A DNA stretch of 64,000 nucleotides from IMGVR_UViG_3300046513_000348:124001-188000, one strand, 5' to 3'; positions 4,561 to 21,230 are shown, counted from the first letter of the stretch. Made by a program: numbers and translations. The notes: a model not told the origin generated them from the sequence alone.

Positions 4561-4601
4561 CCTCAAAAATAAAGTTTTATCTTATTTAACGGAGAATATC
4601 C

Positions 4602-6488: not shown

Positions 6489-6497
6489 AGAGAAATC

Positions 6498-7520: not shown

Positions 7521-7575
7521 AATAAAAAGCAATACCTCGTGAAGATATGGTGTCCACCATTCTTAGGAGTCTAAC

Positions 7576-8106
7576 ATGAAATCTCAGCAGGCAATCAACG
7601 TACTCGCAGCCCTCAACTCGTTTACGCCAGTGCCAGCGGATTTGATGCTCCTCGAGGTATTGTCTTCGCCATACCCTTATCAACAGGGTATGGTTAAAGC
7701 GATTCTCGAGGGCGGTAAACAGATCACCCTCGAGAGCGCTGAAGAAATGTGGCCGTATGTTCGTAACGGCTGCCTCAAGATTGAGGGCATGGAAAAACTG
7801 AGCCAGAAGCTCTGGGATTTCTGTAACCTCGTCCGCACGGAGCGTGGCCGTTACAAGCCCGTCTCGTGCCACATCTTCAATGCGACTCAAGGTGCTCCCA
7901 GTTTTCCGGATCATACCGATCCGGAAGATGTATACCTCTATGTCGTCGGCGGCGAGAAAACTCTCATCGTCGAGGGTAAAGAGGTCGTACTCAAGGCTGG
8001 CGATTCGCTCTGCATTCCTGCGGGTACGACTCATCGTGCCGTGAATCACAAAGCTTCCTGCATGCTCAGCATCGGCTTTGACAAGTTTATTCTGGAGAAG
8101 CTCTGA
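7576..8106 (+). CDS. JmjC/cupin-type Fe(II)/2OG oxygenase (Cupin_4/ROX-like core)
   Basis: FPDHTDPEDV (HxD), GGEKTL (K) and LKAGDSLCIPAGTTHRA (distal His). SD AGGAG upstream. Confidence 0.75.
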   Translation: MKSQQAINVLAALNSFTPVPADLMLLEVLSSPYPYQQGMVKAILEGGKQITLESAEEMWPYVRNGCLKIEGMEKLSQKLWDFCNLVRTERGRYKPVSCHIFNATQGAPSFPDHTDPEDVYLYVVGGEKTLIVEGKEVVLKAGDSLCIPAGTTHRAVNHKASCMLSIGFDKFILEKL

Positions 8107-9173
8107 TGCACAGAACAGTTTATATCAAGACGACGGAAGCCTGCCAGCTGAATTGCAAGCATTGTTTCACTGGCGGCAATGGTCCTGCTCGTACTTTCCT
8201 CGACATGGACAAGACCGAGCAATGGATCCGTCGTTTCAATAATGCGATTACGCCCCGTGACGAAGTTCACTTCGAACTGCATGGCGGCGAACCTTTCCTG
8301 GCTCCCGTTGACATGCTGAAGCGCTTAACCCGCGCTATCCGTGTCTGGGGTCCTGCATTGCACACGGTCGGCGCCACGACTAACCTCGTGTACAAAATGT
8401 CCGACGAGTTGTTCTGGTTCATCAAGAACGATCTCGACAGCATCGCAACCAGCTGGGACAAGGGTATCCGTTTCGAGAATCCTAAGCAGGAAGATCTGTG
8501 GCGGACGAACTTGAAACGTCTGATTGACGCTGGCATCAAAGTCGTTCTGAACGTCAGCGTGTCTCGCGCGGTTGTCGAGATGGATCAGGAGGAGCTCGTT
8601 AAGTTCCTTCGTGATACCGGTTGCTACAAAGTGCAGTTCGACCGCATCACCCAAAACGGCAATGCCAACAATCACCTGGACCTCTTCCCCAGCAACGCAG
8701 AAATCAACCAGTGGTATCTGCGCATGCATGCAGCAACTGAAAAGCTGAATGCTCGGGAATGGTTCTACAACTCGGCACTGGAAGATGTGTATGCCAAGTT
8801 CGAGAAAGGTAACTCCTGCTCGGGTACTTTTTGCCGTGACTGCGAAGAGACGATTCTCACGCTGAACGCAGACGGTACGATCGGCGGTTGTCCTAACTCG
8901 GCACCAGAAGAATATTTCGGCAACATCGATATGTTGATGCACCAGCTCCATACTGCCCCGAAGCGTATCGACCTGATGACGAAGGAGAAGGTCCGCAACG
9001 ACCACTGCTTCACCTGCCCGGTATTCAGTTACTGCGGCAGCGATTGTCACCGACTTGAATGGGAAGGCGACGTGTGTGCTTCTCCACGTCAGCTAATGCT
9101 CAAGCTTGCCGGTTTGCCGTACGAAGAAGTCAAAATCCCCAGTAAAAAGTTCATTCCTATTAAGGCCGTCTAA
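8106..9173 (+). CDS. Radical SAM/SPASM-domain protein (rSAM-1)
   Basis: YIKTTEACQLNCKHC (CxxxCxxC), HGGEPFL and SPASM Cys set CSGTFCRDC...GGCPN...CFTCPVFSYCGSDC...C. TGATG overlap with the cupin gene. Confidence 0.92.
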   Translation: MHRTVYIKTTEACQLNCKHCFTGGNGPARTFLDMDKTEQWIRRFNNAITPRDEVHFELHGGEPFLAPVDMLKRLTRAIRVWGPALHTVGATTNLVYKMSDELFWFIKNDLDSIATSWDKGIRFENPKQEDLWRTNLKRLIDAGIKVVLNVSVSRAVVEMDQEELVKFLRDTGCYKVQFDRITQNGNANNHLDLFPSNAEINQWYLRMHAATEKLNAREWFYNSALEDVYAKFEKGNSCSGTFCRDCEETILTLNADGTIGGCPNSAPEEYFGNIDMLMHQLHTAPKRIDLMTKEKVRNDHCFTCPVFSYCGSDCHRLEWEGDVCASPRQLMLKLAGLPYEEVKIPSKKFIPIKAV

Positions 9174-9175
9174 TC

Positions 9176-9709
9176 ATGGTTGCAATTTACAAAACCGACA
9201 TGGACCCGTCCGCTCAGGCTTACCTGACGAACGGTGTCAACAACATGGGCGTGTACACGAGTGGCAACGCTCCTCCCAATACGAACACTGGCCGCTTGAC
9301 CAGCTACAACCGCAATCCGCCGGAAAGCTACCCGTCGCGATATCTGAGCGGCGCCGTCAAAGCGCCTCGGCTGAAAGAGCTGATGATCGCTCTGGCTTCG
9401 AACTACTATATGCTGGGTCGTGGCAATTACGGCCTGCGTAATACCGATTCGACCACGAATCGAGAATGGTACACCGGTACCGGTAGCGGTATCTTCGCTC
9501 TGTCCGGCGTGAACAACGGTATCGCCGGTGCTGCAGCCGGTGCTCCACTTCCGGCAGTTCCAAGTCCGATCACCCATGCCCGTGCATCGGACATCTACGG
9601 CTACGGCTGGGCGCAACTGCAAAGCTGTATCAGTACCGTGAGCGTTGACCTGACCGTCTGCCACAGTTCTTGCCACACCTCGTGCCACGGCTCCCGTGGT
9701 CGTCGTTAA
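9176..9709 (+). CDS. Candidate substrate/precursor protein with C-terminal (CHxS)3-RGRR motif
   Basis: 177 aa, N/G/S/T-rich body, ends VCHSSCHTSCHGSRGRR. Starts 2 nt after the rSAM-1 stop. Confidence 0.7.
   Translation: MVAIYKTDMDPSAQAYLTNGVNNMGVYTSGNAPPNTNTGRLTSYNRNPPESYPSRYLSGAVKAPRLKELMIALASNYYMLGRGNYGLRNTDSTTNREWYTGTGSGIFALSGVNNGIAGAAAGAPLPAVPSPITHARASDIYGYGWAQLQSCISTVSVDLTVCHSSCHTSCHGSRGRR
9659..9694 (+). repeat. Three tandem 12-nt units TGCCAC-N6 encoding CHxS
   Basis: TGCCACAGTTCT TGCCACACCTCG TGCCACGGCTCC. Confidence 0.9.
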
Positions 9710-9730
9710 TAAACACTGAAGGAAACCTCC

Positions 9731-11344
9731 ATGAGCGATAACGAAAACTTTGCATCCAGTACCGAACTGTCGAACATCAGCGAGAAGATCGATTCGATCG
9801 ATTCCGGCACGAATACCTTCGACAGCAATATGCGGCCGGTCGAGCTTCCTGGTTTCCAGGCAGCATTCAATGCAGCAGTCGAGGCGGGTTCTCCGCACAG
9901 CCTGTGCCCGGAAGTCTTGGAACCGATCCCGCACGTCGACATCGACATCGCCGCTACCTATCCGCAGCCCGAGCAGGCAATGATCGAGCGGATCCGCGAA
10001 CCGAATCCCGGCTATGTTCCTACCGGCGAATCGCTGGAAGGCAAGTCGGCTGAAGAAGTCGTCGCTTCCTGGACCGTTCAGTCAGAAACCGATGGTGCCA
10101 TGGAAGTCGGCGAAGGCGTGAAAGAAGTTGCCCAGCGCATCCTCGATGAAACCGGCCTGTCGCCGTCGGAACTGATCGCCAATTCGAGCGTCGCGGACAA
10201 CAATCCGCCGGAAGTTCTTCGTGACGAAGAAGGCAAACCCATCAAAGTCACCATCAGTGTGACGGATCTTTCCGAAGTGATCCACATGCCGGTCCCGGCA
10301 GAAGACACGTCGGACATCAGTGACTTCGAACTGAAGGAAGAAGAAGCGGCGGCAGCATTGGCCATTCGCCAGCAGTTCACCGACAACCTGAATATCGAGC
10401 GCGGTATCGATCTGACTGAACCGCACGTCCTCGACGACGCTTTCGATCCGGAAAATCCCGAGCACATGAAAATGCTCGAAGAAGGCTTGGCCAGCGGCGC
10501 CATTGCCGATGCGAACAAGATCATGGAAAAGCCGGAAATGATCAGCCTGGAAAACGTCCGCGAAACCGTGGTGCCGATTCCGACGGATCTGATCCGCGAG
10601 TTCTTCACGAACAAGGGCCTGTACTACCTGATCGACTATCGCGAGTCCAAGCTCAAGGGCGGTGCTTTCCTGACTTACTTGACCAACCTGAATGTTCCGG
10701 CCGATCTGCGCTTCAGCGCGGTTCTCGAGTACGAAGAGTACGCCGAGCTCATGAAGGCTTACATGGATCAGCGTTCGGTGATCAATTGCCCTCTGCTGCA
10801 CGTCATGGCCGCGGAACTGCTGCTGTTCGCAAAGGGCCTGCCGCACGAGCGTTCGCCGTATGTAACACCGGTGCCGAAAGCTTCGTTCCTCATCCGCTTC
10901 ATCGACGAGAACAAAGAACAGATCGGCAAGTGGCTGCACTTCATCGACTCGACCCAGGTTTTCGCCCTGTCGGCCATCAAAGTCCTGAACGGCTATTATA
11001 AACCGAAGGAGTTCTTCGAGAACATCGATGACAAGGAATACGTCGGCAGCAACATCGCCCAGCTGTATCGCATCCCGGAATTCATCGCGTACTACTTCGC
11101 CCTTGAAGGCGCCGAGTACAAGCTGTCGTACTTCACGCAGCAGTACGAAGAGTACATGTTCAAGAACGAACGCCTGGCCAAGTACTTCCGTTCGCCCCAC
11201 AACTTCTCGGCCCTGATGTTCGAGCACATCGCCCAAGGTACGATCAAAGCCAGTGACATCGGTTACGGCCTGTTCGCCATCGGCGTGTTCGCTCCGGAAG
11301 CAGGTATCGCCGAGTTCGACGCATCGGCCAAAGCGCCGGCATAA
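9731..11344 (+). CDS. Hypothetical protein: acidic disordered N-half plus globular C-terminal domain
   Basis: 537-aa ORF with SD (AAGGA) and phage-typical codon bias. E/D/P-rich for the first ~250 aa. Confidence 0.8.
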   Translation: MSDNENFASSTELSNISEKIDSIDSGTNTFDSNMRPVELPGFQAAFNAAVEAGSPHSLCPEVLEPIPHVDIDIAATYPQPEQAMIERIREPNPGYVPTGESLEGKSAEEVVASWTVQSETDGAMEVGEGVKEVAQRILDETGLSPSELIANSSVADNNPPEVLRDEEGKPIKVTISVTDLSEVIHMPVPAEDTSDISDFELKEEEAAAALAIRQQFTDNLNIERGIDLTEPHVLDDAFDPENPEHMKMLEEGLASGAIADANKIMEKPEMISLENVRETVVPIPTDLIREFFTNKGLYYLIDYRESKLKGGAFLTYLTNLNVPADLRFSAVLEYEEYAELMKAYMDQRSVINCPLLHVMAAELLLFAKGLPHERSPYVTPVPKASFLIRFIDENKEQIGKWLHFIDSTQVFALSAIKVLNGYYKPKEFFENIDDKEYVGSNIAQLYRIPEFIAYYFALEGAEYKLSYFTQQYEEYMFKNERLAKYFRSPHNFSALMFEHIAQGTIKASDIGYGLFAIGVFAPEAGIAEFDASAKAPA

Positions 11345-11353
11345 GGAAACGTC

Positions 11354-12418
11354 ATGCTCAATTTGTTCGATCGTGTCTATATGCGGCACGATAACGTCTT
11401 GATCCGTGGTCAAGGCCAGCGCAAGCTGATCATCACGCCCAAGACGAAAGAAACCGCTTACGTCGAAGGAAAGACCTCGCAGATCGAAATCGGTCTGATC
11501 GGTGTCTACGAGAACCTGGCTGAATGCGAAGCGTTCTACGGCGATCGCGATACCATGTGGGCTGTTCTTCGTCAAACCAAGTCGAAGGTCATCATTATCG
11601 CCGACAAGTGGACGTTTGCGGAACTGATCATTCAGTACTGGAAGTCCATCTTCAAGTCGCCGACGGTGGAAAGTCTCTTCGCGTTGTACGAAGTGATGAT
11701 CAACAACGAAAATCTGCACACCATTCGTCCGATGGAAAAGCGCGTCAATCAGTACTCGGCCGATTCTCCGGATGAAGCCATCGTCAAGCTGACGCCTGCC
11801 GCTTTCAAGGAAGTGTTCGACAAGGTGGAAGGGTCGCCTGTCCTGGAAACCCTGGAGCTGAAAGAACTCCCGTTCGAGTACGCTTTGATGGCCTATCTGG
11901 TTGACGAAACGAACCCGACTGCACGGAAGGTCCTCTTTCCGAAGGTCGACAAGATCGTCAAGGACAACATCGTGGCGCAGCTCATTGGCAGTCGTGACGA
12001 GATGCTCTACGAGTCCCACAACTACTACCTGATCGACGGTAAGGAAAACGAAGTCCCGATCACCGATCCGATCGCGTACATGAAGAACCATCCAGCCCTG
12101 TCGTGGGTCCTGGACGATGTCTTCCAGTACGGGCAGGAAGAAGAGATCCTTGCCAAGTACGGCCTGGAAAAGATCAAGCTGTTCATTCGTGTGGTGGGTC
12201 GTATTCTGTTCGAAAACGATCTGATGTTGGTCGCCATCGACTTCATCCGGAACAAGCAGTACGCTGAACTGATCGCGCACGACATCGGCGATCATCGCGG
12301 CAACTACTTCGGCACCCATGCTTATCAGCGCAAGATCAACAGCCTGTTCGTGTCCTACATGTACCAGCTCAAGCGGCTGAACCTGGTGGACCAACTGGCC
12401 CAGTACCAACTGCGTTAA
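11354..12418 (+). CDS. Hypothetical protein in rSAM cluster
   Basis: 354-aa ORF, SD AAGGA, 9 nt after the previous stop. Confidence 0.8.
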   Translation: MLNLFDRVYMRHDNVLIRGQGQRKLIITPKTKETAYVEGKTSQIEIGLIGVYENLAECEAFYGDRDTMWAVLRQTKSKVIIIADKWTFAELIIQYWKSIFKSPTVESLFALYEVMINNENLHTIRPMEKRVNQYSADSPDEAIVKLTPAAFKEVFDKVEGSPVLETLELKELPFEYALMAYLVDETNPTARKVLFPKVDKIVKDNIVAQLIGSRDEMLYESHNYYLIDGKENEVPITDPIAYMKNHPALSWVLDDVFQYGQEEEILAKYGLEKIKLFIRVVGRILFENDLMLVAIDFIRNKQYAELIAHDIGDHRGNYFGTHAYQRKINSLFVSYMYQLKRLNLVDQLAQYQLR

Positions 12419-12428
12419 AGGCGTAGTC

Positions 12429-12454
12429 CCCAGTCACCCTCACGGGTGACTGGG
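12429..12454 (+). terminator. Stem-loop dividing the rSAM locus
   Basis: CCCAGTCACCC-TCAC-GGGTGACTGGG followed by TCTTATGCTGTC. Confidence 0.7.
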
Positions 12455-12525
12455 TCTTATGCTGTCGATTTAAAATCTATTGCTCGCCTTACTTTTTTGA
12501 ACCGAATATCCCTTTAGGAAACTCT

Positions 12526-13620
12526 ATGAATCAGCCATTCAATTCTGACCTGTCTTCTGCTGCAACGATTGCAAATGCAACCGGCTACCATCTGAGCCTG
12601 AGTCTCGAATGGCTGTCGGGATGTCAGTTTAGCTGCAAGGGCTGCCATGTGAACAAGGAGAACGGGGTTCCTTATACTCCTACTCAAGTGAACCATCTGG
12701 CCCGTTGGCTGGAGGATATGAGGTTCAAGGGCGGTTATACGCCAACGATCGTGTTCTTAGCTCCGACAGATTTCCTGGTTGCTGACAACATCGTGAAAAT
12801 CTTAACGAACATTCACGCATATGGGATTCTGGCTCAGTTCAAGCGACTGTCGCTCCAGACGACGTTCCTCAACATGGATCAGGCCGAGACCATCGCCAAG
12901 ATTCTTAAGCTGCGTTATTCGCACATGGAGCTGGAACTGAACTTCATCATCGAGCCAGAGCAGGTGGAGAATGAGAAGTATCTGGACCGAATCAAGGAGA
13001 ACCGCGCCAAGATGCTGGAACTCCTGGACTGGAAGAAACACGTAGCGTCATTCGCAATCATGAACGTCTACGAGTACGACCGGGTTAAGAAGAACAACGT
13101 CAAAAAGATCCTGGCCGATTATCAGGCACTCCACCAGCGTATCAAAGAGAAGTTCGATTCCACAATCGACTTCAATTTCTCCATGACCCGTAACTCCTGG
13201 TGGTCGGGCGAAGACATCAAGGAAGCGGTCCAAAGTGTCAGCCGTATCTTCGATGCTGGCGTAAGCCACGAGATCAACCAGACCATTCGATTCTCCTTCG
13301 GCAAGCTGGAAGACTCGGCTATCGAAAAACACTACAACTGGCATCAGGGAAATCTTTACGTATCGCCCATGATCTATGAGCGGATTGCTTCCTTCGATGA
13401 CCGACTGAAGGTGCCTTACGGCGGTGTGAAAGCAACCGAGGACTTCGAGCTGAAGCTCATGATCGATCAGTATCATTGGTCCGAGAAAGACGTGCCGTGC
13501 AAGGGCTGTAACTATCAGGCTTCCTGCGTGGATCGAAACGTCCTGACCTTCATGAAAATGAACGACATCAAAGAGTGCATCATCGCAAAGAAAGCACTCG
13601 ACGCCATTAACGTAATCTAA
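12526..13620 (+). CDS. Degenerate radical SAM-like protein (rSAM-2)
   Basis: LSGCQFSCKGCH (CxxxCxxC), but APTDF occupies the expected GGE position. Short C-terminal CKGCNYQASC. Confidence 0.75.
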   Translation: MNQPFNSDLSSAATIANATGYHLSLSLEWLSGCQFSCKGCHVNKENGVPYTPTQVNHLARWLEDMRFKGGYTPTIVFLAPTDFLVADNIVKILTNIHAYGILAQFKRLSLQTTFLNMDQAETIAKILKLRYSHMELELNFIIEPEQVENEKYLDRIKENRAKMLELLDWKKHVASFAIMNVYEYDRVKKNNVKKILADYQALHQRIKEKFDSTIDFNFSMTRNSWWSGEDIKEAVQSVSRIFDAGVSHEINQTIRFSFGKLEDSAIEKHYNWHQGNLYVSPMIYERIASFDDRLKVPYGGVKATEDFELKLMIDQYHWSEKDVPCKGCNYQASCVDRNVLTFMKMNDIKECIIAKKALDAINVI

Positions 13621-13632
13621 ACCGAGAATATC

Positions 13633-14664
13633 ATGAACCAAGAAGGCTTCCTGCAAAACGTCCTGGCAAGCAAGCTGCCTGAATCCTCAGAGATCGAACA
13701 TCATCTGTTCGAGTTCTGCAACCTGAACTGCTCCTTCTGCGGTCAGGATCACAAATCCACCGTGGGCATGGATTCGATCATCGATAAGGCATATCAGACC
13801 GTCGACTTCATCATGCGTTCGCCGTTAAAAATGCACACCATCAACGTGATGGGCGGCGAGATCTTCAACGACGGCATTGGCGTCGATGTCTTCCTCCAGT
13901 ACTTCGAGTTCTACGAGATCATCCGTAAAGCTTGTGCGGACCTGAAGGTTGACTTCCAGATCAACTGGGTGACGAACCTGGTGTTCAAGGAGAACCGCGA
14001 GATGGTCGATCTCCTGATGGAGAAGACTTCGATGCATTCCCGCATCTCGACGTCTTACGACTTCGCTGGTCGTGGGTTGAACCTGAACAAGAAGATGTTG
14101 TTCGAGTACAACCTGCTGTATTACAAGAAGTACATCGGTGTGGTTGGTTTCGTTCTGACCGCTCCTGCCATCCGTAAGCTGATCGCTAACAAGGATCGCT
14201 TCTTCCGCGACATTCTCTACGGCAACTATCCGTTGTACTTCGACTGGTATGTGCCGGAGAAGACTGCTGAGAAGATGATGCCGTCTGAGCAGGAGACACT
14301 CGATGGACTCCTCTTCATCGCCGACAACTATCCGGAAGTCGAACCAGTCAAGAGCCTCTTGCAGAACAAAGAAAACAAGATGACTTGCTACTCGCTGAAC
14401 AAGACCACCATCTTGCCAGACGGGAAGGAAGTCAAGTGCCGTTACATGGAATACGACAAGTCGGATTTCCAGAACGACATCGACTACAGTTCGAACGCCA
14501 ACATCATCACGGCGCATATCGAACGTCACGACTGCATGTCCTGTGAATGGTACGAGAAGTGCCAGTTCCGCTGCTTCGTAAACGCAGACTGGGGCAAACT
14601 CGAACGCCTCCCGGAATGCCTGTTCAAAACCTTTTTCGAAAAGACGAAACATCTCCATGGATAA
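13633..14664 (+). CDS. Radical SAM protein with SPASM-like tail (rSAM-3)
   Basis: FEFCNLNCSFC, MGGEIF and C-terminal CMSCEWYEKCQFRC (CX2CX5CX3C). Confidence 0.88.
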   Translation: MNQEGFLQNVLASKLPESSEIEHHLFEFCNLNCSFCGQDHKSTVGMDSIIDKAYQTVDFIMRSPLKMHTINVMGGEIFNDGIGVDVFLQYFEFYEIIRKACADLKVDFQINWVTNLVFKENREMVDLLMEKTSMHSRISTSYDFAGRGLNLNKKMLFEYNLLYYKKYIGVVGFVLTAPAIRKLIANKDRFFRDILYGNYPLYFDWYVPEKTAEKMMPSEQETLDGLLFIADNYPEVEPVKSLLQNKENKMTCYSLNKTTILPDGKEVKCRYMEYDKSDFQNDIDYSSNANIITAHIERHDCMSCEWYEKCQFRCFVNADWGKLERLPECLFKTFFEKTKHLHG

Positions 14665-15022
14665 GAATCAAATGCTGTCTTTCCTGGCCTACCTGGTTTT
14701 GTATTTCCTTTACAAAGCCATCGTGGGCTTTATCAAAGGCATCTGGAAGTCGGCGAATTGGACGAGATATATTCCTCGGTCCGGCCGGAAGCTCTTCAGT
14801 CGAGCACTTCCGATCCTGCTGCTGTTCGTGGTGGTCAATGTGGTCTTTCATCTGGCCGCCAATCCGAAAGACATGTTCGCTTACTATTCGATGGTTTGCT
14901 TCATGCTCTCTTTCGCCTGGCTTTGGACGATCGATGAATACGATCTCTCGATCAAAGACATCTTCAGCATGGTGACCTTCGGCATCGGCTGCATTCTCCT
15001 CCATCTTCATCCTCTGTTCTAA
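14657..15022 (+). CDS. Small multi-pass membrane protein
   Basis: 121 aa with about four hydrophobic segments. Overlaps the rSAM-3 stop. Confidence 0.7.
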   Translation: MDKNQMLSFLAYLVLYFLYKAIVGFIKGIWKSANWTRYIPRSGRKLFSRALPILLLFVVVNVVFHLAANPKDMFAYYSMVCFMLSFAWLWTIDEYDLSIKDIFSMVTFGIGCILLHLHPLF

Positions 15023-15029
15023 ATACAAA

Positions 15030-15521
15030 ATGGTCAAGCTCACTATCATCGTCGCACGCGCCTTGAATGGCGTCATCGGTAACGGCAACAAACTCCCGTG
15101 GAACATCCCGGAAGACATGAAACACTTCAGGACCTACACCAAGGGCAAGCCGGTCATCATGGGCCGTCTGACTCACGAGTCGATCGGCATGGTCCTGCCT
15201 GGCCGCATGAACATCATCGTGTCGCGCAATCCCGACTATCGCGTCGAAGGCGCGGTCGTGGTCAATTCCCTGCCAGCTGCACTGGAACTCGTGCACGAAC
15301 TGCCGGAAGCCGTTCTGATCGGCGGCATGCAATTGTACGAATATGCGCTCAATGAAGATCTGGTCGACAAGTGCGTAGTCACCCAACTCGAAGATGCCTA
15401 CTCGGGCGATGCGTTCTTCCCGGCTCTCGACGAAACCAAGTGGGAGCCTGTCATGAGTCAGCAGAGCTTCCCGAGCTGCGGCTTCACCATCATCGATTAT
15501 CGGCGGCGTAAAGCGTCATGA
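15030..15521 (+). CDS. folA: Dihydrofolate reductase
   Basis: IIVARALNGVIGNGNKLPWNIPEDMKHFR...GKPVIMGRLT..SI..LPGRMNIIVSR...IGG..LY...GDAFFP. Confidence 0.97.
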   Translation: MVKLTIIVARALNGVIGNGNKLPWNIPEDMKHFRTYTKGKPVIMGRLTHESIGMVLPGRMNIIVSRNPDYRVEGAVVVNSLPAALELVHELPEAVLIGGMQLYEYALNEDLVDKCVVTQLEDAYSGDAFFPALDETKWEPVMSQQSFPSCGFTIIDYRRRKAS

Positions 15522-15658
15522 AAAATTGCGATCCGAACGTGTTGTTCGTTCTGGTGCCGTGGGCCTTCATCATTTTGGTCGTAGGCCTTTACGGTTGCTT
15601 CATTTTCCATGCAAGGAAAGAAAGAAAACGCTATGAGCGCTCCTGCTTTAATCATTAA
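15518..15658 (+). CDS. 46-aa single-TM peptide (not in ORF track)
   Basis: ATGA overlap with the DHFR stop. MKNCDPNVLFVLVPWAFIILVVGLYGCFIFHARKERKRYERSCFNH: a TM segment followed by a basic tail. Confidence 0.5.
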   Translation: MKNCDPNVLFVLVPWAFIILVVGLYGCFIFHARKERKRYERSCFNH

Positions 15659-16718
15659 GCCAACAGAAGCGTGTAACTTCAAGTGCACCTTCTGTTCGAG
15701 CACCGACATCCAGGGCGATTCCCCGAACCTGGATCTCGAGTACATCCGACAATACCTGCAGGCTTTCCCCAGCTGCCCGACGATCATCATTAATGGCGGC
15801 GATCCGCTCATGATGAAGCCGGAGTACTACTGGAAGATCATCCACATGCTGGACGAGATGGGTCTCGCAACCACCCTGTCGTTCACCACCAATCTCTGGG
15901 CTTTCTACAAGAAGCCGGAAATGTGGGAGAACCTGTTCCTGAGTCCGCGTGTAGGTGTCGCTACTTCGTTCCAGTACGGCAATGCTCGCCTCAAGGGCGA
16001 CCTGACCCCGTACACGGAAGAAGAGTTCTGGGCTGTTTCCGATCTGTTCTTGAAGCGCATCGGCTATCGTCCCGAGTTCATCGCCGTCATCACCAAGGAA
16101 AACGAAGACACGGTTATCAAGACCGTGGAACTGGCCAAGAAGATGGGCGTGGTCTGCAAAGTAAACTACGCCATGGCTTCTGGTCCAACGACAGAGTTCA
16201 AGGGCATCAAGATCGGTAATGCCGACAGCACCTACGTGTTGGCCGACATCTATCAGAAGTACATCGAGATCTACGAAGCGGGCCTGGCCGAGTGGGAACA
16301 CAACACCAAGGTCATGATGACGCGGCTGATCGGCGGCTTCTCGATCTGCCCGCAAGCACGTAACTGTGACCAGCATATCCGTGCCTTGCAACCCGGCGGC
16401 AAGTACTACAGCTGCGGTGCATTTGGTGACGACGGCCTGTATCCAATTGACTTCCAAACCGAAGTGATTAAGAACAAAGGGAAGTTCGTCGAGATGCCTC
16501 TCCAATGGCAACCGGAACTGCAAAGCCTGAAGACGGCCTGTTTCGAATGTCCGATGTTCGAAATCTGCAACGGCTGCCGTAAGACGACTCATGACCTGAA
16601 GCGTCTGGGCCTGGTGGAAACCCATTGCGCCAAGATGAAAACCCTGGCTCCAAAGATCATCGATATCAACGGCCTGACCGGTAAGGTCGAACCCACTCCG
16701 TATGTGAAGGAGAACTAA
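15633..16718 (+). CDS. Radical SAM/SPASM-domain protein (rSAM-4)
   Basis: IIKPTEACNFKCTFC, INGGDPL, ICPQARNC...YYSCG...CFECPMFEICNGC...HC. Start refined to MSAPAL. Confidence 0.92.
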   Translation: MSAPALIIKPTEACNFKCTFCSSTDIQGDSPNLDLEYIRQYLQAFPSCPTIIINGGDPLMMKPEYYWKIIHMLDEMGLATTLSFTTNLWAFYKKPEMWENLFLSPRVGVATSFQYGNARLKGDLTPYTEEEFWAVSDLFLKRIGYRPEFIAVITKENEDTVIKTVELAKKMGVVCKVNYAMASGPTTEFKGIKIGNADSTYVLADIYQKYIEIYEAGLAEWEHNTKVMMTRLIGGFSICPQARNCDQHIRALQPGGKYYSCGAFGDDGLYPIDFQTEVIKNKGKFVEMPLQWQPELQSLKTACFECPMFEICNGCRKTTHDLKRLGLVETHCAKMKTLAPKIIDINGLTGKVEPTPYVKEN

Positions 16719-17426
16719 ATGCATGATCCAGTCGTGCAGTTCTTCAAGGACAACATAGCGAGGCTTGATCCGCTGTGTTGTAACTTCTCTTTCGTCAACG
16801 GAAGGGCGGAAGAAATAATTTACAACATCGATGGCAAATATCCTGAGATTTATCGCGCCATGTTTGACGCGGTAATGGAGGACCATTTCCCGGATATCGA
16901 AAGGGAACGAATCGAAGCGGTTAGTTTCCAGCAAGCAGATGGCGGACTGTATCAGGAAGACAAGTTCCTGGTCTCTGTCGACAATGCCAAGATGGACTGC
17001 TTCCTCTATCCCGAACTGAACTGCTTTAATCCGTTCCTGTTTTACGGCATCAATTCGGGCGTCGATACGAAGAATCGCTCCTGTAAGTTTTATGACCTGG
17101 ATACTACGGCATACACTTGCATGGAATGGCCGTCGTTCATCCAGCTGTTCGACAAGTACGGTGCCGGTGTCGGCATTAAGCCCGATATCGTAGGGATCTA
17201 CTTCCTGTCTCACGAATACCAAAAGGTAATCGATTGGGTAGGACTGCCTGATCCGGTTCCTGCTGAACTCAAGGATGTGATCCTGCCCAAGGCTAGCATC
17301 CACAACTTCGGCCTGACGTTCAACATCAAGACGAAAGAAATGGTCAAGCTGAGTTACTTCTTCTACAACGACCAATATCGTGAAGACGTCATGCCGTATC
17401 TGAAGGAAAGAAATGAAACCGTTTAA
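16719..17426 (+). CDS. Hypothetical protein in rSAM cluster
   Basis: 235-aa ORF abutting the rSAM-4 stop (TAA-ATG). Confidence 0.75.
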   Translation: MHDPVVQFFKDNIARLDPLCCNFSFVNGRAEEIIYNIDGKYPEIYRAMFDAVMEDHFPDIERERIEAVSFQQADGGLYQEDKFLVSVDNAKMDCFLYPELNCFNPFLFYGINSGVDTKNRSCKFYDLDTTAYTCMEWPSFIQLFDKYGAGVGIKPDIVGIYFLSHEYQKVIDWVGLPDPVPAELKDVILPKASIHNFGLTFNIKTKEMVKLSYFFYNDQYREDVMPYLKERNETV

Positions 17427-18018
17427 TTCGGCCGAAATGATTGGTGACTATCTTGGCAAGGGTGGTTACCATTTCAATGCGGAAGCAGTACTGAAGGATT
17501 TCGATTACAAGTGCTTCCTTCCGCGCAACCGTGCTTACGGCGAGCATGAAACACTGAACTCGGCCATCAAGCTGAATTCGTACAGCCTGTACCAAATCAA
17601 CCAAATCCGCGATCTGACGCACCGCATCAGTACGGAGTACTTGTCGGACTTCCGCCACCACATCTTCTATCACGACTTCTACGATATCGTTTACCCGACG
17701 TCGAAGAACTGGCATTACGATATCGAAGACATCCTGGACTGGAAGGGCTACAACGCTGTCCTGAACTGCTACTTCGAAGACACGTCGCCTGAAAACGACG
17801 ACATCGCGGTAACGTTCACGCCGTATGACGATGCCATCGTCGACACGCAGAAGCAGCGGGATTCCGACCTGATCTACGTGAAGAAGAACGACATCGTCCT
17901 GATCAACCAGACCCGTCGTTTCCTGCATCGCGTGACCGATGATCACCAGCGCCGTCCTATCCTGATGTTCGCCATCTCGTTTATGGACTTCCCCGCCGAC
18001 CTACCGTTACCAGGCTAA
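17413..18018 (+). CDS. 2OG-Fe(II) oxygenase-like protein (paralog A)
   Basis: WHYD...NCYF...INQTRRFLHRV...RRP: HxD...H facial triad plus Arg. Confidence 0.7.
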   Translation: MKPFNSAEMIGDYLGKGGYHFNAEAVLKDFDYKCFLPRNRAYGEHETLNSAIKLNSYSLYQINQIRDLTHRISTEYLSDFRHHIFYHDFYDIVYPTSKNWHYDIEDILDWKGYNAVLNCYFEDTSPENDDIAVTFTPYDDAIVDTQKQRDSDLIYVKKNDIVLINQTRRFLHRVTDDHQRRPILMFAISFMDFPADLPLPG

Positions 18019-18022
18019 AATC

Positions 18023-18958
18023 ATGAAAGATAGCAAAGTCATCAACCTGTCGGTTAACCCGACTTACTTCTGTAATTTCCGTTGTGGCTTTTGCTATCTG
18101 ACGGAGGAACAACTTTCCGATCAGAAACGACTGGGCTTGGACGTCCTGAAACAACGCATCGAAGAAATCCGCGAGGCCGGTTACGAGATCGGCCATGTGG
18201 ACCTGTACGGCGGCGAGGTGCTCTTGCTGCCTTACGAATATCTGTTGGCTGCCAAGGTACTCATGCGAGTCGAAGGTGCGCAGGACATCGAGATCATCAC
18301 CAACCTGTCGACTTATCGTCAAGAGATCCTCGATGACCAACGCTTCGGTATCTCGGTAAGCTACGACTTCGAGCATCGACAGCAGGCCGATCATGTTTGG
18401 AAGAACATGATGAAGATGACCCGTCCCTTCACGGTTCTGACTCTGGGTATTCCGGAACTCCTGAAGAAGGATCCCATCGAATGCATCGAACAGCTGAACC
18501 TGCTGTCGAACTGCCATCACTGGGAGATCAAACCTTACAGCACGAATCAGGCGAACCAACTGCCTTTCAAGTATTCGGACTACGAAGCCTTCATCCAGAA
18601 GGTGATCGATTACCCGAATAAGAACTTCGAGTTCCTCAACGAGGTGGCTCTGAAGATGGCCCACTACGGTGACGCCAATCCTTATTCGGACGACCACGTC
18701 TACATTACGCCGAGTGGCAAATTCGGTGTTCTGGAATTCGACAAGAACGACAACGAGTATTTCCTGGAGCTCGACTCCTTCGGCAACTACCTGGACTGGA
18801 CCTTGCTTGAGAAATCGCGCGTTCTGTCCAATGCATTCTGCGGCTCCTGCAACTACAACGGTCGCTGTATCTCGGAGCACCTGCGTGAGGTCAAGTCCCT
18901 CGACGACAGCTGTAACGGGTTCCACAATCTGATACAGTGGTACGAGAAGAAACTATGA
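18023..18958 (+). CDS. Radical SAM protein with short Cys-rich tail (rSAM-5)
   Basis: SVNPTYFCNFRCGFCY, LYGGEV, ITPSG and CGSCNYNGRCISEH...SCNG. Confidence 0.9.
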   Translation: MKDSKVINLSVNPTYFCNFRCGFCYLTEEQLSDQKRLGLDVLKQRIEEIREAGYEIGHVDLYGGEVLLLPYEYLLAAKVLMRVEGAQDIEIITNLSTYRQEILDDQRFGISVSYDFEHRQQADHVWKNMMKMTRPFTVLTLGIPELLKKDPIECIEQLNLLSNCHHWEIKPYSTNQANQLPFKYSDYEAFIQKVIDYPNKNFEFLNEVALKMAHYGDANPYSDDHVYITPSGKFGVLEFDKNDNEYFLELDSFGNYLDWTLLEKSRVLSNAFCGSCNYNGRCISEHLREVKSLDDSCNGFHNLIQWYEKKL

Positions 18959-19521
18959 CTCAACTTTCTGTTGACGAACCCTGGCATACGCCAGTCGGTA
19001 AATGGAACTACGCCCAGCGAATCGGCCATCTTCAGCTGCTGGATGAGGTAATGCAGAATCCCGACATCATGAAGGATGTGAAGGTCGGGTCTCTGCGTAT
19101 CTCGGATCGCCGGGAACAGTTCCCCAACTTTTACAACTTCATCGATACCGAACTGACCGCAGCATTCAGGCAGTATCTGTTCGACTGTTACAAACACACT
19201 CCGACGGAAGTAACATGGTCAGCATGGGTTCATGTCTGCCTGCATGGCCAAGGTCTTGTGCCTCATTACCACATGGGCGATGAGCATCTGACCTCGATTG
19301 TCTATCTGACGGAGTCGAAAGCGAATTTGGTTCTTCGGGATCCTCGCGCCAACATGGTTCGCAATTGGCCCCAAGAAATCCTGAAGGATCATTACAAAGA
19401 TTACGAAATTCATCCAAGAGTCGGTGACTTCGTTATGTTCCCAACCTTTATCGACCATTACGTAATGGCGACTGAACCGGACTTCCGTGTATCGGTTGCC
19501 ATTGACTGGTGTTTTAAATGA
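18955..19521 (+). CDS. Putative 2OG-Fe(II) oxygenase (TIGR02466-like)
   Basis: PHYH...LTSIVYL...LVLRDPR...GDFVMFPTFIDHYV...RVSVA. ATGA overlap sets the start at MTQ. Confidence 0.8.
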   Translation: MTQLSVDEPWHTPVGKWNYAQRIGHLQLLDEVMQNPDIMKDVKVGSLRISDRREQFPNFYNFIDTELTAAFRQYLFDCYKHTPTEVTWSAWVHVCLHGQGLVPHYHMGDEHLTSIVYLTESKANLVLRDPRANMVRNWPQEILKDHYKDYEIHPRVGDFVMFPTFIDHYVMATEPDFRVSVAIDWCFK

Positions 19522-20117
19522 CAACTCTTAACTCAAGCGCATTCCTCGCTGACTTCCTTACCAAAGGTTTCCACTGCTTCAATGCGGCGGACTTTTTACA
19601 ACTGTGCCCGATCGAGAAGTTCCAGACCGTCACCGTCAAGCACGCCGACAACTGCTTTCATGCGGAAGGCCATGAATTTCATAACGAGATCATGACGTCG
19701 GCAATCAAGGGCCTGATGTCGATCCTGACTGGCAGTGTCTTGTACGAGTTCGATGCTTCGCTGGCATTCGACTTCTTCGCCGATAAGCCGAACGATCATG
19801 TCGTGAAGTTCCACAGCGATGCACAGTACGCGATGCCTGGACAGAATGCCACGATTAATTGCTTCTTCGACGACACTGATGAGACCACGGGCGGCCGTTT
19901 CGATATGTCGCCTTACCGTGAAGACATCTTCGGCAAGAGCGACGATGTTCCTGGAATGGCCTCGGTCTATCCGAAGATGTACGACATCATCATCTTCAAT
20001 CAGAATCGGAATTTCCTGCATAAGGTGACATCGGCAAATTCGCGGCGCCGGATGATCTCCTTCGCCTGCACTTTCCATGACATCAACCCACTTCATCCGA
20101 ACTGGGTGCCAGCATGA
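19518..20117 (+). CDS. 2OG-Fe(II) oxygenase-like protein (paralog B)
   Basis: FHSD...INCFF...GG...FNQNRNFLHKV...RRRMISF. ATGA overlap. Confidence 0.75.
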   Translation: MTTLNSSAFLADFLTKGFHCFNAADFLQLCPIEKFQTVTVKHADNCFHAEGHEFHNEIMTSAIKGLMSILTGSVLYEFDASLAFDFFADKPNDHVVKFHSDAQYAMPGQNATINCFFDDTDETTGGRFDMSPYREDIFGKSDDVPGMASVYPKMYDIIIFNQNRNFLHKVTSANSRRRMISFACTFHDINPLHPNWVPA

Positions 20118-20689
20118 TCGACGTCGGCGAGTTTATTACTGAATATCTGACCAAAGGCTTCTTCCGCTTCAATGCGCACGAGGTCCTTAGCAGCTTCGAT
20201 TTGCGGGCTTTTGGGAAGATCAAGAAAACGGACACAACTTTCTACACGAAGCACCCGAAAGAGCGTTACAAGGGCTATACGGACCTGCAAGAGGCACTCC
20301 TGAAGCAACTTTCGCGCGACCTGTCGGAAATGTACTTCCACGAACTCAACCATGAGCTTCGTTTCAATGACATGTGGTCGTCGGCCAATCCGAATACCTA
20401 CGAATGGCACAACGATACCCTCCGCTGCTGGCCTGGTTTCAACAGTAGCGTGAACTGCTACTTCGACAGCACGGATCTCGAGACCGGCGGTTCGCTGCAA
20501 TTGCATCCGAACATCTATGCTGAGATCGAGGACGACTCGCGGGACATCAGCGAGGTCTATCCGCAGCAGTTCGATGTGATCGTGATTAACCAGAACTCCA
20601 ACTGGATGCATCGCGTTCTTCACACCGAACGTCCTCGTCGCATGGTGGCATTCGCAGGAGCATTCTTCGATTTCAATCCGGTGATCTAA
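20114..20689 (+). CDS. 2OG-Fe(II) oxygenase-like protein (paralog C)
   Basis: WHND...VNCYF...GG...INQNSNWMHRV...RRMVAF. ATGA overlap. Confidence 0.75.
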   Translation: MIDVGEFITEYLTKGFFRFNAHEVLSSFDLRAFGKIKKTDTTFYTKHPKERYKGYTDLQEALLKQLSRDLSEMYFHELNHELRFNDMWSSANPNTYEWHNDTLRCWPGFNSSVNCYFDSTDLETGGSLQLHPNIYAEIEDDSRDISEVYPQQFDVIVINQNSNWMHRVLHTERPRRMVAFAGAFFDFNPVI

Positions 20690-21148
20690 ATGAAACAGCC
20701 TGAACAAAAAGAATGGAAGATGTGGCAGCAGGTTTACAATAGCCTGGTAACTGACCACAGCGACGATCGCAAATACCATAAGCTCGAGTATTCATCCGAG
20801 AAAGTGGAGAATGCGTTCTTCTACCTGAACGAGAAAGCAGACTACGGCATTTACCCTGCCAAGAGCCGCATCATCGCAATCATCTACGCCACCATGCTGG
20901 AAAAGGTGTATGGCGAGGACTTCTACGAGGTTCTCAATGATCCCGACCTGCTGTACGGCCAGGATGATTTCTTCGTGCCATATCTGGAAGACATGGACAC
21001 GTACGATGCGATCATCGAACGCCTCAAGACTATGCCGGATTGGTTGGAGATGGGCTGGGCACCCAAGACTGTCGAGTACTTCTATTTGGAGTGCACGCAG
21101 AAGGGCGTCGAGTCGATTAACGGCAACAACATGACGGACGTCAAATAA
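20690..21148 (+). CDS. Hypothetical protein, last gene of rSAM cluster
   Basis: 152-aa ORF abutting the previous stop and followed by a hairpin. Confidence 0.75.
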   Translation: MKQPEQKEWKMWQQVYNSLVTDHSDDRKYHKLEYSSEKVENAFFYLNEKADYGIYPAKSRIIAIIYATMLEKVYGEDFYEVLNDPDLLYGQDDFFVPYLEDMDTYDAIIERLKTMPDWLEMGWAPKTVEYFYLECTQKGVESINGNNMTDVK

Positions 21149-21158
21149 CGAAAGTATA

Positions 21159-21190
21159 CATACATGGATGGCGCAAGCCATCCATGTATG
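21159..21190 (+). terminator. Stem-loop ending the rSAM operon
   Basis: CATACATGGATGGC-GCAA-GCCATCCATGTATG 14-bp stem with a GNRA loop. Confidence 0.8.
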
Positions 21191-21230
21191 GTGTATGTCT
21201 GCAAAGATCATGTGTTACGGAGGACTAAAA

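Follow-up and report, generated by a model that had tools for sequence, protein, structure and literature searches.

A conserved phage gene module of radical SAM enzymes and iron oxygenases linked to a protein with an invariant Cys-His tail

Several radical SAM systems that mature peptides or proteins have been described, and the HXS antiphage system (HxsA-D; Li et al., Nat Commun 2026, PMC13128918) is the closest characterised analogue of the locus reported here. It uses a protein effector with His-Xaa-Ser repeats and many basic residues, which is matured by two radical SAM enzymes together with HxsD, binds DNA and stops DNA entry. The effector is a peptidoglycan-binding periplasmic protein of Pseudomonadota with five internal period-3 repeats, every one of which is essential. 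Cofactor-type RiPP pathways (PQQ, PqqA/PqqE; mycofactocin, MftA/MftC) use one SPASM radical SAM enzyme with a PqqD-like RRE, acting on the invariant C-terminal core of a precursor of 20-30 aa, followed by oxidative tailoring; a peptidase is included. The core is far more conserved than the rest of the precursor. In the QhpC/QhpD system (quinohemoprotein amine dehydrogenase gamma subunit), a single SPASM radical SAM enzyme installs several Cys-Asp/Glu thioether cross-links in a small protein which stays part of a larger assembly. The SCIFF/ranthipeptide, triceptide, darobactin/dynobactin and anaerobic sulfatase maturases belong to the SPASM/twitch superfamily and pair with a Cys- or aromatic-rich motif.

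The locus analysed here is found in a jumbo phage, on a 218,660-bp IMG/VR contig (IMGVR_UViG_3300046513_000348, of which positions 124001-188000, 64,000 nt, form the window). Like HXS, it combines a protein, not a short peptide, carrying H-x-S repeats and basic residues with dedicated radical SAM enzymes and small accessory proteins. It differs in having 4-7 radical SAM enzymes (five in the window), oxygenases, one core domain modelled with no known fold plus two further core proteins lacking any family or sequence match, and three period-4 CHxS repeats at the extreme C-terminus which end in RGRR. It occurs in phages and Bdellovibrionota. The set has not been studied before.

Gene content of the locus

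The original prediction, that 7576-21148 is a compact cluster of 17 co-oriented genes with five radical SAM proteins, five Fe/2OG-type oxygenases and a Cys/His-repeat protein, was confirmed. The gaps between the 17 plus-strand ORFs are, in order, -1, 2, 21, 9, 107, 12, -8, 7, 87, 0, -14, 4, -22 (or an ATGA overlap if the gene at 18937 starts at the ATG at 18955), -4, -4 and 0 nt. The GC content of the cluster (0.50-0.55) matches the rest of the window. Two corrections are required: one of the 17 genes codes for a dihydrofolate reductase and one for a small membrane protein, and both are lineage-specific rather than part of the conserved module. The functional unit also probably extends upstream to two fibre-like genes. 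The features are as follows (genes are named below by their start position).

4602-6488 (+): fibre-like virion protein, 628 aa, a paralogue of the next gene, with the 'NPH..T..QVG' fibre motif and about 60-aa repeats; homologues (family U3) lie upstream of the module in loci L074, L076, L059/60 and L069 of our collection.
6498-7520 (+): fibre-like virion structural protein, 340 aa, coiled coil, ending 55 nt before the module; the orthologues in RSF1 and SURPRISE13 are annotated as virion structural protein.
7576-8106 (+): JmjC-type cupin, probably an Fe/2OG protein hydroxylase (core family).
8106-9173 (+): radical SAM/SPASM enzyme 1 (core); C13/C17/C20 plus 8 conserved C-terminal Cys.
9176-9709 (+): tail protein, 177 aa, a folded, fast-evolving N-domain plus the invariant C-terminal (CHxS)3RGRR (codons 9659-9706), followed by a double stop TAATAA.
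9731-11344 (+): 537-aa protein with a lineage-specific acidic N-terminal extension and a conserved C-terminal domain of about 245 aa (10535-11341; core, phrog_20767).
11354-12418 (+): 354-aa protein (core, phrog_36207), which diverges as fast as the N-domain of the tail protein.
12526-13620 (+): radical SAM enzyme 2, with one auxiliary cluster (four conserved C-terminal Cys); the copy number varies from 0 to 5.
13633-14664 (+): radical SAM/SPASM enzyme 3 (core); C29/C33/C36 plus 7 conserved C-terminal Cys; in 77 of 80 loci.
14657-15022 (+): membrane protein, 121 aa, specific to this phage (one locus only).
15030-15521 (+): dihydrofolate reductase (PF00186, E 7e-47), a lineage-specific insert with two copies in Chiangmaivirus.
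15609-16718 (+): radical SAM/SPASM enzyme 4, the most conserved member (core); median identity 61%, 84 invariant alignment columns.
16719-17426 (+): 235-aa accessory protein, sporadically present.
17413-18018 (+): Fe/2OG-type oxygenase paralogue, an extra copy specific to this phage.
18023-18958 (+): radical SAM enzyme 5, with one auxiliary cluster (core); C17/C21/C24 plus C273/C276/C282/C297; in 79 of 80 loci.
18937-19521 (+): 2OG-FeII_Oxy_5 oxygenase (frequent member, 72 of 80 loci); the likely start is the ATG at 18955.
19518-20689 (+): two paralogous Fe/2OG-type oxygenases (19518-20117 and 20114-20689), variable members.
20690-21148 (+): 152-aa well-conserved protein (core, phrog_20737) with 12 invariant residues, in 70 of 80 loci.
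21159-21190: perfect 14-bp-stem hairpin directly after the last gene, possibly marking the end of the operon.

The radical SAM proteins (8106, 12526, 13633, 15609 and 18023) all carry CxxxCxxC and match PF04055. The triad and the C-terminal auxiliary-cluster cysteines are conserved in 40-50 orthologues of each, with 7-8 extra conserved Cys in 8106, 13633 and 15609, which have full SPASM cysteine sets, and 4 in 12526 and 18023, which have a single auxiliary cluster. The SPASM model TIGR04085 scores 29.8 bits for 8106 (cut-off 27). This SPASM/twitch class mostly acts on peptides and proteins. The cupin scores 51 bits for Cupin_2 and 35.8 bits for JmjC_2 (PF08007, cut-off 22). Its HxD...H...K signature of protein hydroxylases (H113, D115, H153 and the 2OG-binding K128) is invariant in 35 sequences, and the family profile matches the histidyl hydroxylase MINA53 (E 6e-5); protein hydroxylation is inferred from this. 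Among the other oxygenases (PF13759/PF13640), 18937 scores 38.9 bits against a threshold of 27, while 20114 (23.7) and 19518 (18.4) match 2OG-FeII_Oxy_3 only weakly, below 27, but keep HxD...H...R. Gene 17413 is assigned solely as their paralogue.

The original prediction placed the locus close to named RiPP classes. Membership in these is not supported, as all hits to HxsB/HxsC, PapB/SCIFF, triceptide and sulfatase-maturase models are about 10- to 20-fold below their cut-offs. The best scores are 21.5 bits against 370 for HxsB (TIGR03978) and 31.9 against 267.9 for HxsC (TIGR03977). Neither an HxsD partner nor a peptidoglycan-binding domain in the effector was found: the tail protein, 9731 and 11354 have no Pfam or NCBIfam hit, with 16719 and 20690 scanned against Pfam only. 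PapB scores 40.7 against 340, and the tail protein matches no SCIFF precursor model (such precursors have about 45 aa). The triceptide maturases YhhB, GrrM/OscB and AmcB score 30.3 against 445, 25.2 against 310 and 28.2 against 425 bits; the H-x-S motif fits the three-residue cyclophane pattern and is compatible with this chemistry, which is not a test of it. The sulfatase maturase model TIGR03942 scores 45.9 against 349. Although C-H-G-S-R resembles the sulfatase C-x-(P/A)-x-R motif, the last repeat reads C-H-[G/S/N/T/C]-[S/A]-R, and the P/A position is thus not kept. For the SCIFF, triceptide, darobactin/dynobactin and sulfatase group the best scores are 40-47 bits against cut-offs of 340-450, the precursor is unrelated, and none of these systems combines five radical SAM enzymes with JmjC and 2OG oxygenases. 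QhpD is related at the superfamily level only (TIGR03906, 18 bits against 453). No member of the module reaches any curated family cut-off that would predict the chemistry.

Conservation of the module and of the tail

About ten of these gene families occur in the same order in Chiangmaivirus phages, three other jumbo phages, hundreds of IMG/VR contigs and ten Bdellovibrionota MAGs. Tail-seeded scans found the module in 65 IMG/VR loci and 10 genome loci. A lack of co-occurrence between the tail protein and the radical SAM genes had been named beforehand as a refuting outcome, the only one accessible in silico, and the opposite was observed. Every one of 87 tail-seeded loci carries radical SAM genes of these families. 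In the reverse direction, a scan seeded on radical SAM 15609 (365 stretches, of which the best 80 were kept) revealed a tail ORF upstream on the same strand in 68 loci and variant tails in 4 more, and six of the remaining loci are cut by contig ends. The order is cupin, radical SAM, tail protein, C-terminal domain of 9731, 11354, radical SAM, radical SAM, radical SAM, 20690, 2OG. Not all 17 genes belong to this unit, since the dihydrofolate reductase, the membrane protein and 17413 are lineage-specific.

The tail protein ends CHSSCHTSCHGSRGRR, the only such motif in all six frames of the window. In 73 distinct proteins the Cys, His and terminal Arg positions are invariant (73/73), while the N-domains are only about 25% identical. 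The three repeats read H-S-S, H-T-S and H-G-S in the window, and the Ser position is kept in 70/73, 68/73 and 69/73 proteins. The tail protein thus has tandem His-Xaa-Ser repeats as in HXS, although these are of period 4, separated by Cys, and three rather than five in number. The N-domain is confidently folded in an AF2 model (pLDDT 89.8, with a flexible tail), has no PDB fold match, and consists of 47% Thr/Ala/Asn/Gly/Ser and 1.9% Lys. The conserved domain of 9731 is present in 72 of 77 and 74 of 80 loci, and its family has 666 clusters at 50% identity in public data; the AF2 model has pLDDT 89.9 with no PDB match. Protein 11354 has no Pfam or PDB match and a median pairwise identity of 23%.

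An invariant core on a variable carrier is also the pattern of cofactor-type RiPPs. The 16-residue core could be modified, cut off and released as a fixed small product such as a redox cofactor, metal chelator or inhibitor, as happens with PQQ or mycofactocin. The C-terminal position of the core and the several oxidative tailoring enzymes beside the SPASM enzymes would fit, and the three accessory core proteins could include a peptidase. However, the carrier is a confidently folded domain of 110-300 aa rather than a short leader, no protease, transporter or RRE/PqqD domain was recognisable in the profile searches, the residues before the core show no cleavage motif, and the linkage to fibre genes (see below) is unexplained. 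We consider this alternative unlikely.

Even less likely, in our view, is that the tail protein is not a substrate but a metal- or Fe-S-binding helper (scaffold, electron donor or sulfur donor) for radical SAM enzymes acting on the neighbouring fibre protein, a nucleotide or DNA. The three Cys-His pairs are plausible metal ligands, a dihydrofolate reductase lies within the cluster in this lineage, and the adjacent giant fibre genes could be the real targets. On the other hand, the reductase is absent from all loci outside the Chiangmaivirus-like group, Ser, Gly and RGRR are conserved about as strictly as Cys and His, which metal binding alone does not require, and the fibre families differ between lineages while the enzymes stay the same. 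Also, SPASM/twitch enzymes usually act on a neighbouring peptide.

A fibre gene (IMC-domain family or the NPH-motif family of the window) lies directly upstream of the module in 48 of 59 testable loci, with a median gap of 31 nt. This lends support to the earlier guess that the target is a virion protein, but adjacency could simply reflect placement in a late operon. The records of RSF1, FLC6 and SURPRISE13 do not label the tail-protein orthologue as a virion protein, and the monomer model is globular, not fibre-like. Most Bdellovibrionota loci have no fibre gene beside the module; only two of them (L078 and L084) have a pilin-like protein with a Peptidase_S74 domain. The tree of 15609 separates a Bdellovibrionota clade from all viral rows and groups the window with its jumbo relatives, which points to old, vertical inheritance.

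The resemblance to HXS raises the possibility of a barrier function, in which the matured basic protein binds incoming DNA or blocks entry channels, resulting in superinfection exclusion in phages and antiphage defence in Bdellovibrionota. The H-x-S repeats followed by RGRR and the sharing of the system between bacterial chromosomes and phages are consistent with this. Exclusion genes lie beside receptor-binding genes in T5 (llp) and T1-like (cor) phages. Yet the tail protein has no signal peptide or peptidoglycan-binding domain, PADLOC returned only weak generic viperin hits, and the HxsB/HxsC scores are far below cut-off. Vertical inheritance, the fixed position behind fibre genes and the cost of about 10 kb are unlike sporadic defence cargo, and among cellular genomes the module is confined to one phylum as one clade. 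We regard this reading, too, as unlikely.

A putative maturation system for a protein tail

The interpretation that the enzymes and the CHxS-tailed protein form one post-translational modification pathway is partly supported. The statement that no pathway of this kind is characterised now needs to be qualified, given that HXS is a radical-SAM-matured HxS-repeat protein effector.

Our preferred but tentative explanation is a conserved protein-maturation module with the flexible C-terminal tail [VIL]-CHxS-CHx(S/N)-CH(G)(S/A)-RGRR as substrate, borne by a small protein with a fast-evolving N-domain rich in Thr, Asn, Gly and Ser. In this view, four to seven SPASM/twitch radical SAM enzymes would modify Cys, His or Ser of the tail by radical chemistry, possibly as cross-links or an HXS-like carbon insertion, while the JmjC-type cupin and the Fe/2OG oxygenases would hydroxylate His or Arg. 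The domain at 10535-11341, 11354-12418 and 20690-21148 would also be needed, and the protein at 11354 may hold the variable N-domain. The genes would be made together with the preceding fibre genes, and the matured product would most likely remain a protein and work with the adsorption or tail apparatus, for example as a rigid, cationic, polyanion- or metal-binding tip. Our analysis shows the gene content, the motif invariance, the two-way co-occurrence, the conserved order, the linkage to fibre genes and, from the tree, the vertical inheritance. That the tail is the substrate is an inference which we consider likely; the chemistry and function are likewise inferred, as no modification has been observed, and the link to the virion or fibre is more doubtful.

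A more far-reaching possibility, which we consider speculative and rather unlikely, is that tailed phages of several deep lineages (phiKZ-related jumbo phages, 470-490-kb phages, many uncultured aquatic myoviruses) and predatory Bdellovibrionota share an ancient enzymatic factory. This factory would build a radical-SAM-crosslinked, hydroxylated Cys/His/Arg 'warhead' on the end of a fast-evolving surface protein of the prey-recognition apparatus, which would be the first RiPP-like, enzyme-matured component of a virion, made by new chemistry on CHxS repeats.

Gene content of the cluster and the phage carrying it

Between positions 7576 and 21148, the window carries 17 co-oriented ORFs on the + strand. 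Most are separated by overlaps or by gaps of a few nucleotides, and only two gaps are larger (107 and 87 nt). The genes, designated here by their start coordinates, were assigned by scans against Pfam, NCBIfam, and PHROG as follows:

7576 (+), cupin/JmjC_2 protein
8106, 12526, 13633, 15609, and 18023 (+), radical SAM proteins
18937 (+), 2OG-FeII_Oxy_5 oxygenase
17413, 19518, and 20114 (+), three mutually paralogous Fe/2OG-type proteins
15030-15521 (+), dihydrofolate reductase (DHFR; E 7e-47)
14657 (+), small membrane protein
9731, 11354, 16719, and 20690 (+), proteins with no family
9176 (+), 177-aa protein which ends CHSSCHTSCHGSRGRR and is followed by two stop codons (the "tail protein")

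The original prediction, which described a tightly packed cluster of radical SAM proteins and oxygenases with a Cys/His-repeat protein, is thus correct as an observation, although the DHFR was not recognised.

Very long antisense ORFs of 989, 775, and 575 aa are found at 4563-7532 (-), 10082-12409 (-), and 15648-17375 (-). None of these starts with ATG, and the + strand ORFs which they overlap have database homologues or family matches. We take them to be stop-free antisense frames rather than genes. A perfect hairpin with a 14-bp stem (21159-21190) lies 11 nt after the last cluster gene and overlaps the predicted start of the next gene (21164/21168). It may be an operon-end or RNA-stability element, but promoter and terminator scans were otherwise not above chance. 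The next gene (21168-22214) codes for a Kelch-repeat protein (348 aa) that is not found next to the module in other loci.

The window belongs to a 218,660-bp IMG/VR contig. A GC-rich stretch (0.625 compared to about 0.52 elsewhere) corresponds to the gene for the phiKZ-type major head protein (53948-56209, minus strand), which is 75% identical at the protein level to that of Ralstonia phage RSF1. The phage is therefore a new relative of Chiangmaivirus. DNA similarity to the Chiangmaivirus phages (RSL2, RSF1, FLC6/8, FLC4-x, SURPRISE13, RsoM3USA) is patchy, at about 75%. These phages are described as phiKZ-related jumbo phages (PMC5468394), and the cluster is syntenic in all of them. Their published annotations list the cupin, radical SAM, and 2OG genes as accessory genes without interpretation.

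The tail protein and the conserved gene set

Chiangmaivirus orthologues of the tail protein are only 32-37% identical to that of the window, yet they end in an identical 19-residue stretch apart from one T/S change. A word-seeded protein search retrieved further proteins whose only evident similarity is this tail. Across 73 distinct proteins, the three Cys, the three His, and the Arg at positions -3, -1, and 0 are invariant, Gly at -2 is found in 72 of 73, and the Ser after each His-x in 70, 68, and 69 of 73. The general form is [VIL]-CHxS-CHx(S/N)-CH(G)(S/A)-RGRR at the very C-terminus. Rare variants have two or four repeats, an extra residue, or lack RGRR. Examples from individual loci of the scans are four CHxS repeats (L083, 156-761), two repeats (L108, about 7146), CNCN replacing the last CH unit (L134, about 7076), four repeats without RGRR (L156, about 8109), and an inserted residue before RGRR (L092, about 8885); these would be useful for structure-activity work.

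The N-terminal parts of these proteins are 110-300 aa long and have a median pairwise identity of 25%. Thr, Ala, Asn, Gly, and Ser make up 47% of their residues, Lys is 1.9%, and almost none contain Cys. No extra domains were found in the longest tail proteins. An AlphaFold2 model of the window's protein is confident (pLDDT 89.8, pTM 0.82) and predicts a compact alpha/beta domain with a low-confidence, exposed tail. Foldseek searches with this model returned no PDB match and, in BFVD, only uncharacterised members of the same family.

An IMG/VR scan seeded on the tail yielded 65 viral loci. Iterated family profiles showed which families accompany the tail in a set of 77 loci, many of which are cut by contig ends.

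Table. Families accompanying the tail (number of loci of 77)
Cupin 7576: 59
Radical SAM 8106: 65
C-terminal domain of 9731 (9731C): 72
11354: 56
Radical SAM 13633: 66
Radical SAM 15609: 57
Radical SAM 18023: 49
20690: 43

To avoid ascertainment bias, the reverse test was run with a scan seeded on radical SAM 15609, which gave 365 stretches of which the best 80 were kept. Of these 80, 68 have a canonical tail ORF 2.8-8.4 kb upstream on the same strand, four more have variant tails, and six of the remaining eight are truncated by contig ends. In this set the gene order is nearly fixed: cupin, radical SAM 8106, tail protein, 9731C, 11354, radical SAM 13633, radical SAM 15609, radical SAM 18023, optional copies of 12526, then 20690 and the 2OG oxygenase. 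The module is also carried by cultured phages outside Chiangmaivirus, namely Pseudomonas phage pPa_SNUABM_DT01, Agrobacterium phage Atu_ph07, and Sinorhizobium phage Phosso. The 9731C family alone has 666 clusters at 50% identity in public proteins, 503 of them at E up to 1e-10.

DHFR, the membrane protein, and 17413 occur only in the window's lineage or in the window alone, so they are inserts. The DHFR had suggested DNA or nucleotide modification. This reading was rejected because DHFR occurs only in the Chiangmaivirus-like group (7 of 77 and 3 of 80 loci); the Chiangmaivirus phages have two DHFR genes at the same place while all other carriers of the module have none.

All five radical SAM proteins keep the CxxxCxxC triad across 40-50 orthologues. 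Proteins 8106, 13633, and 15609 also keep seven or eight C-terminal cysteines, including CxxCx5Cx2-3C, which is a full SPASM domain with two auxiliary clusters, while 12526 and 18023 keep four, which means one auxiliary cluster. None starts with an RRE-like domain, because the triad lies within the first 40 residues. Membership in the Hxs, SCIFF/ranthipeptide, triceptide, darobactin/dynobactin, Cys-every-fifth, and sulfatase-maturase families was rejected, as all scores are far below the cut-offs. The best curated-family scores are 40-47 bits against cut-offs of 340-450 (DynA, sulfatase maturase, TIGR04083, and PapB), and HxsB and HxsC are weaker still. The proteins therefore belong to the superfamily but to no described family. 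Single-sequence searches of PDB with 8106 and 15609 gave no hit at E 1e-3. The cupin keeps H113, D115, K128, and H153, exceeds the JmjC_2 threshold, and, as a profile, matches the MINA53 histidyl hydroxylase. The 2OG paralogues keep HxD...H...R.

For the proteins with no family, Pfam returned no hits even when every family member was scanned, and profile searches against PDB sequences found nothing real, the PPR hits being repeat artefacts. 11354 and 20690 have no Pfam or PDB sequence relatives. The conserved domain of 9731 gives a confident model (pLDDT 89.9, pTM 0.87) for which Foldseek found no PDB match. The 537-aa protein 9731 additionally has an acidic, low-complexity N-terminal extension of about 265 aa (9731-10534), which is lacking in most orthologues (about 240 aa long), although some database relatives (391-604 aa) also have N-terminal extensions. 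11354 diverges as fast as the N-domain of the tail protein (23% compared to 25% median identity), whereas 15609 stays at 61%. On divergence alone, 11354 could be a partner of the variable domain.

Linkage to fibre genes and occurrence in Bdellovibrionota

In nearly every viral locus with enough upstream DNA, the module follows large virion genes on the same strand. One family, seen in 41 loci, shares a C-terminal domain of about 130 aa of the autoproteolytic intramolecular-chaperone type (weak Peptidase_G2 hit), and its members include DUF5907 fibre repeats. A second family consists of giant DUF4815 proteins of 1,500 to more than 3,200 aa; DUF4815 corresponds to a PHROG of virion, baseplate, and tail proteins. 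In the jumbo group, the upstream genes are those at 4602-6488 and 6498-7520 in the window, which are paralogues with an "NPH..T..QVG" motif and about 60-aa repeats, and whose orthologues in RSF1 and SURPRISE13 are annotated as virion structural proteins. In RSF1 (locus L003), a GIY-YIG homing-endonuclease gene (11427-12344) is inserted between the fibre-like gene and the cupin, breaking the otherwise tight junction.

In the unbiased set seeded on the radical SAM enzyme, 48 of 59 testable loci have such a gene directly upstream, with a median gap of 31 nt and 43 gaps of at most 100 nt. A subgroup of viral loci (L014, L015, L020, L021, L025, L027, L030, L035, L052, L053) lacks the cupin and radical SAM 8106 but has two tandem tail proteins of about 125 aa and five tandem copies of the 12526-type radical SAM gene, directly after a fibre gene of more than 3,100 aa. 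In one subgroup, a fibre ORF of this size ends 6 nt before the first of two tail-protein genes. The fact that three unrelated fibre families occupy the same position argues for a functional link, or at least for co-transcription with late genes.

The related Ralstonia jumbo phages phiRP12 and phiRP31 (PMC5468394, supplementary ORF tables) have two YomR-like fibre genes followed by small unannotated ORFs and a different-looking set of radical SAM, "arylsulfatase regulator", and MoaA-like genes, which may be a diverged version of the module. For phiRP31, those ORF labels did not turn up in the supplementary files other than the ORF tables, a result which does not extend to a virion-protein table.

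A scan of 185,579 species genomes with exact tail patterns, by which cellular variants of the tail would have been missed, found ten loci. All are in Bdellovibrionota MAGs and carry the full module, often with seven radical SAM genes. We considered whether these might be mis-binned phage contigs. However, the flanks encode ordinary bacterial functions (E1 dehydrogenase, ABC transporters, DctP, a Suv3-like helicase, and YceI). In a tree of 15609, the seven Bdellovibrionota rows form one clade (support 100/99), set apart from every viral row, while the window groups with Chiangmaivirus, the locus L074, and pPa_SNUABM_DT01. Both results argue against mis-binned phage DNA and for long vertical inheritance on each side. 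Two of the Bdellovibrionota loci have an extra B12-binding radical SAM gene (L081, 17799-19754; L084, 7210-8937), and two have a pilin-like protein (N-terminal methylation motif) with a Peptidase_S74 chaperone domain beside the module (L078, 5479-6603 (-); L084, 17654-18700).

Comparison with characterised systems and interpretation

The nearest characterised system is HXS (PMC13128918). Its effector HxsA carries five His-Xaa-Ser repeats rich in basic residues and needs the radical SAM enzymes HxsB and HxsC plus HxsD for N-terminal processing and for a +8 Da change on an SHRSS motif. It then sits in the periplasm, binds DNA, and blocks phage DNA entry. The present tail is formally three H-x-S units followed by RGRR and may thus work like HXS. 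An HXS-like DNA-entry barrier used for exclusion or defence is one rival reading. The module is not a member of that system, however: the enzyme scores fail the family cut-offs, there is no HxsD and no peptidoglycan-binding domain, the repeats have period 4 with Cys between them, the enzyme set is much larger, and the hosts differ. A known defence system was also rejected, as PADLOC gave only weak generic viperin hits.

The pattern of an invariant core on a variable carrier recalls PQQ and mycofactocin, and a released cofactor or RiPP is a second rival reading. Cross-linking of a small protein that stays in a complex recalls QhpC/QhpD. A third rival is that the tail protein is a metal-binding helper for enzymes with another target. 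No paper was found that mentions the tail motif, although the short search strings mostly matched German words, or that treats these genes as a unit; genome papers only list the genes.

The gene content, the invariance of the tail, its co-occurrence with the enzymes, the gene order, and the position behind fibre genes are direct results of the sequence analysis, while the modification itself, its chemistry, and any role in the virion are inferred. We consider it well supported that the tail is the substrate of the radical SAM and oxygenase set. Candidates for the chemistry include thioether or carbon-carbon cross-links at Cys, His, or Ser, an HXS-like carbon insertion, and His or Arg hydroxylation. 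It is less certain, and remains a tentative reading, that the product stays a protein associated with the fibre or adsorption apparatus. This is supported by the fibre linkage, the composition and rapid divergence of the N-domain, duplicated tail genes in some phages, and the restriction to entities that attack Gram-negative cells. Against it stand the absence of a virion label in published annotations, the globular model, and the lack of fibre genes in most Bdellovibrionota loci. The interpretation in the original prediction, a phage-encoded modification pathway acting on a virion protein or a peptide effector, is partly supported, and the feature proved to be real and far more general than could be seen from the single sequence.

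The module is best filed under radical-SAM-dependent protein or peptide maturation. Such maturation of peptides is known from bacterial natural products and, since 2026, from one antiphage effector, but it has not been described as a conserved, vertically inherited part of phage genomes. The module takes about 10 kb in each genome, its 9731C family alone has at least 500 diverged clusters in public data, and it contains at least one domain whose predicted structure matches no known fold (the predicted fold of the tail protein's N-domain is also unmatched) together with two further proteins without assignment. Its putative substrate tail is more conserved than any of its enzymes. The module also explains a block of "accessory" genes which papers on biocontrol phages of Ralstonia, Burkholderia, and Agrobacterium list without comment. 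It is of high interest for enzymology, as its chemistry would probably reveal new radical SAM reactions on Cys-His-Ser motifs, and for phage and predator biology, as its function would show either how phages and bacterial predators equip their adsorption machinery, or a new kind of exclusion system or cofactor.
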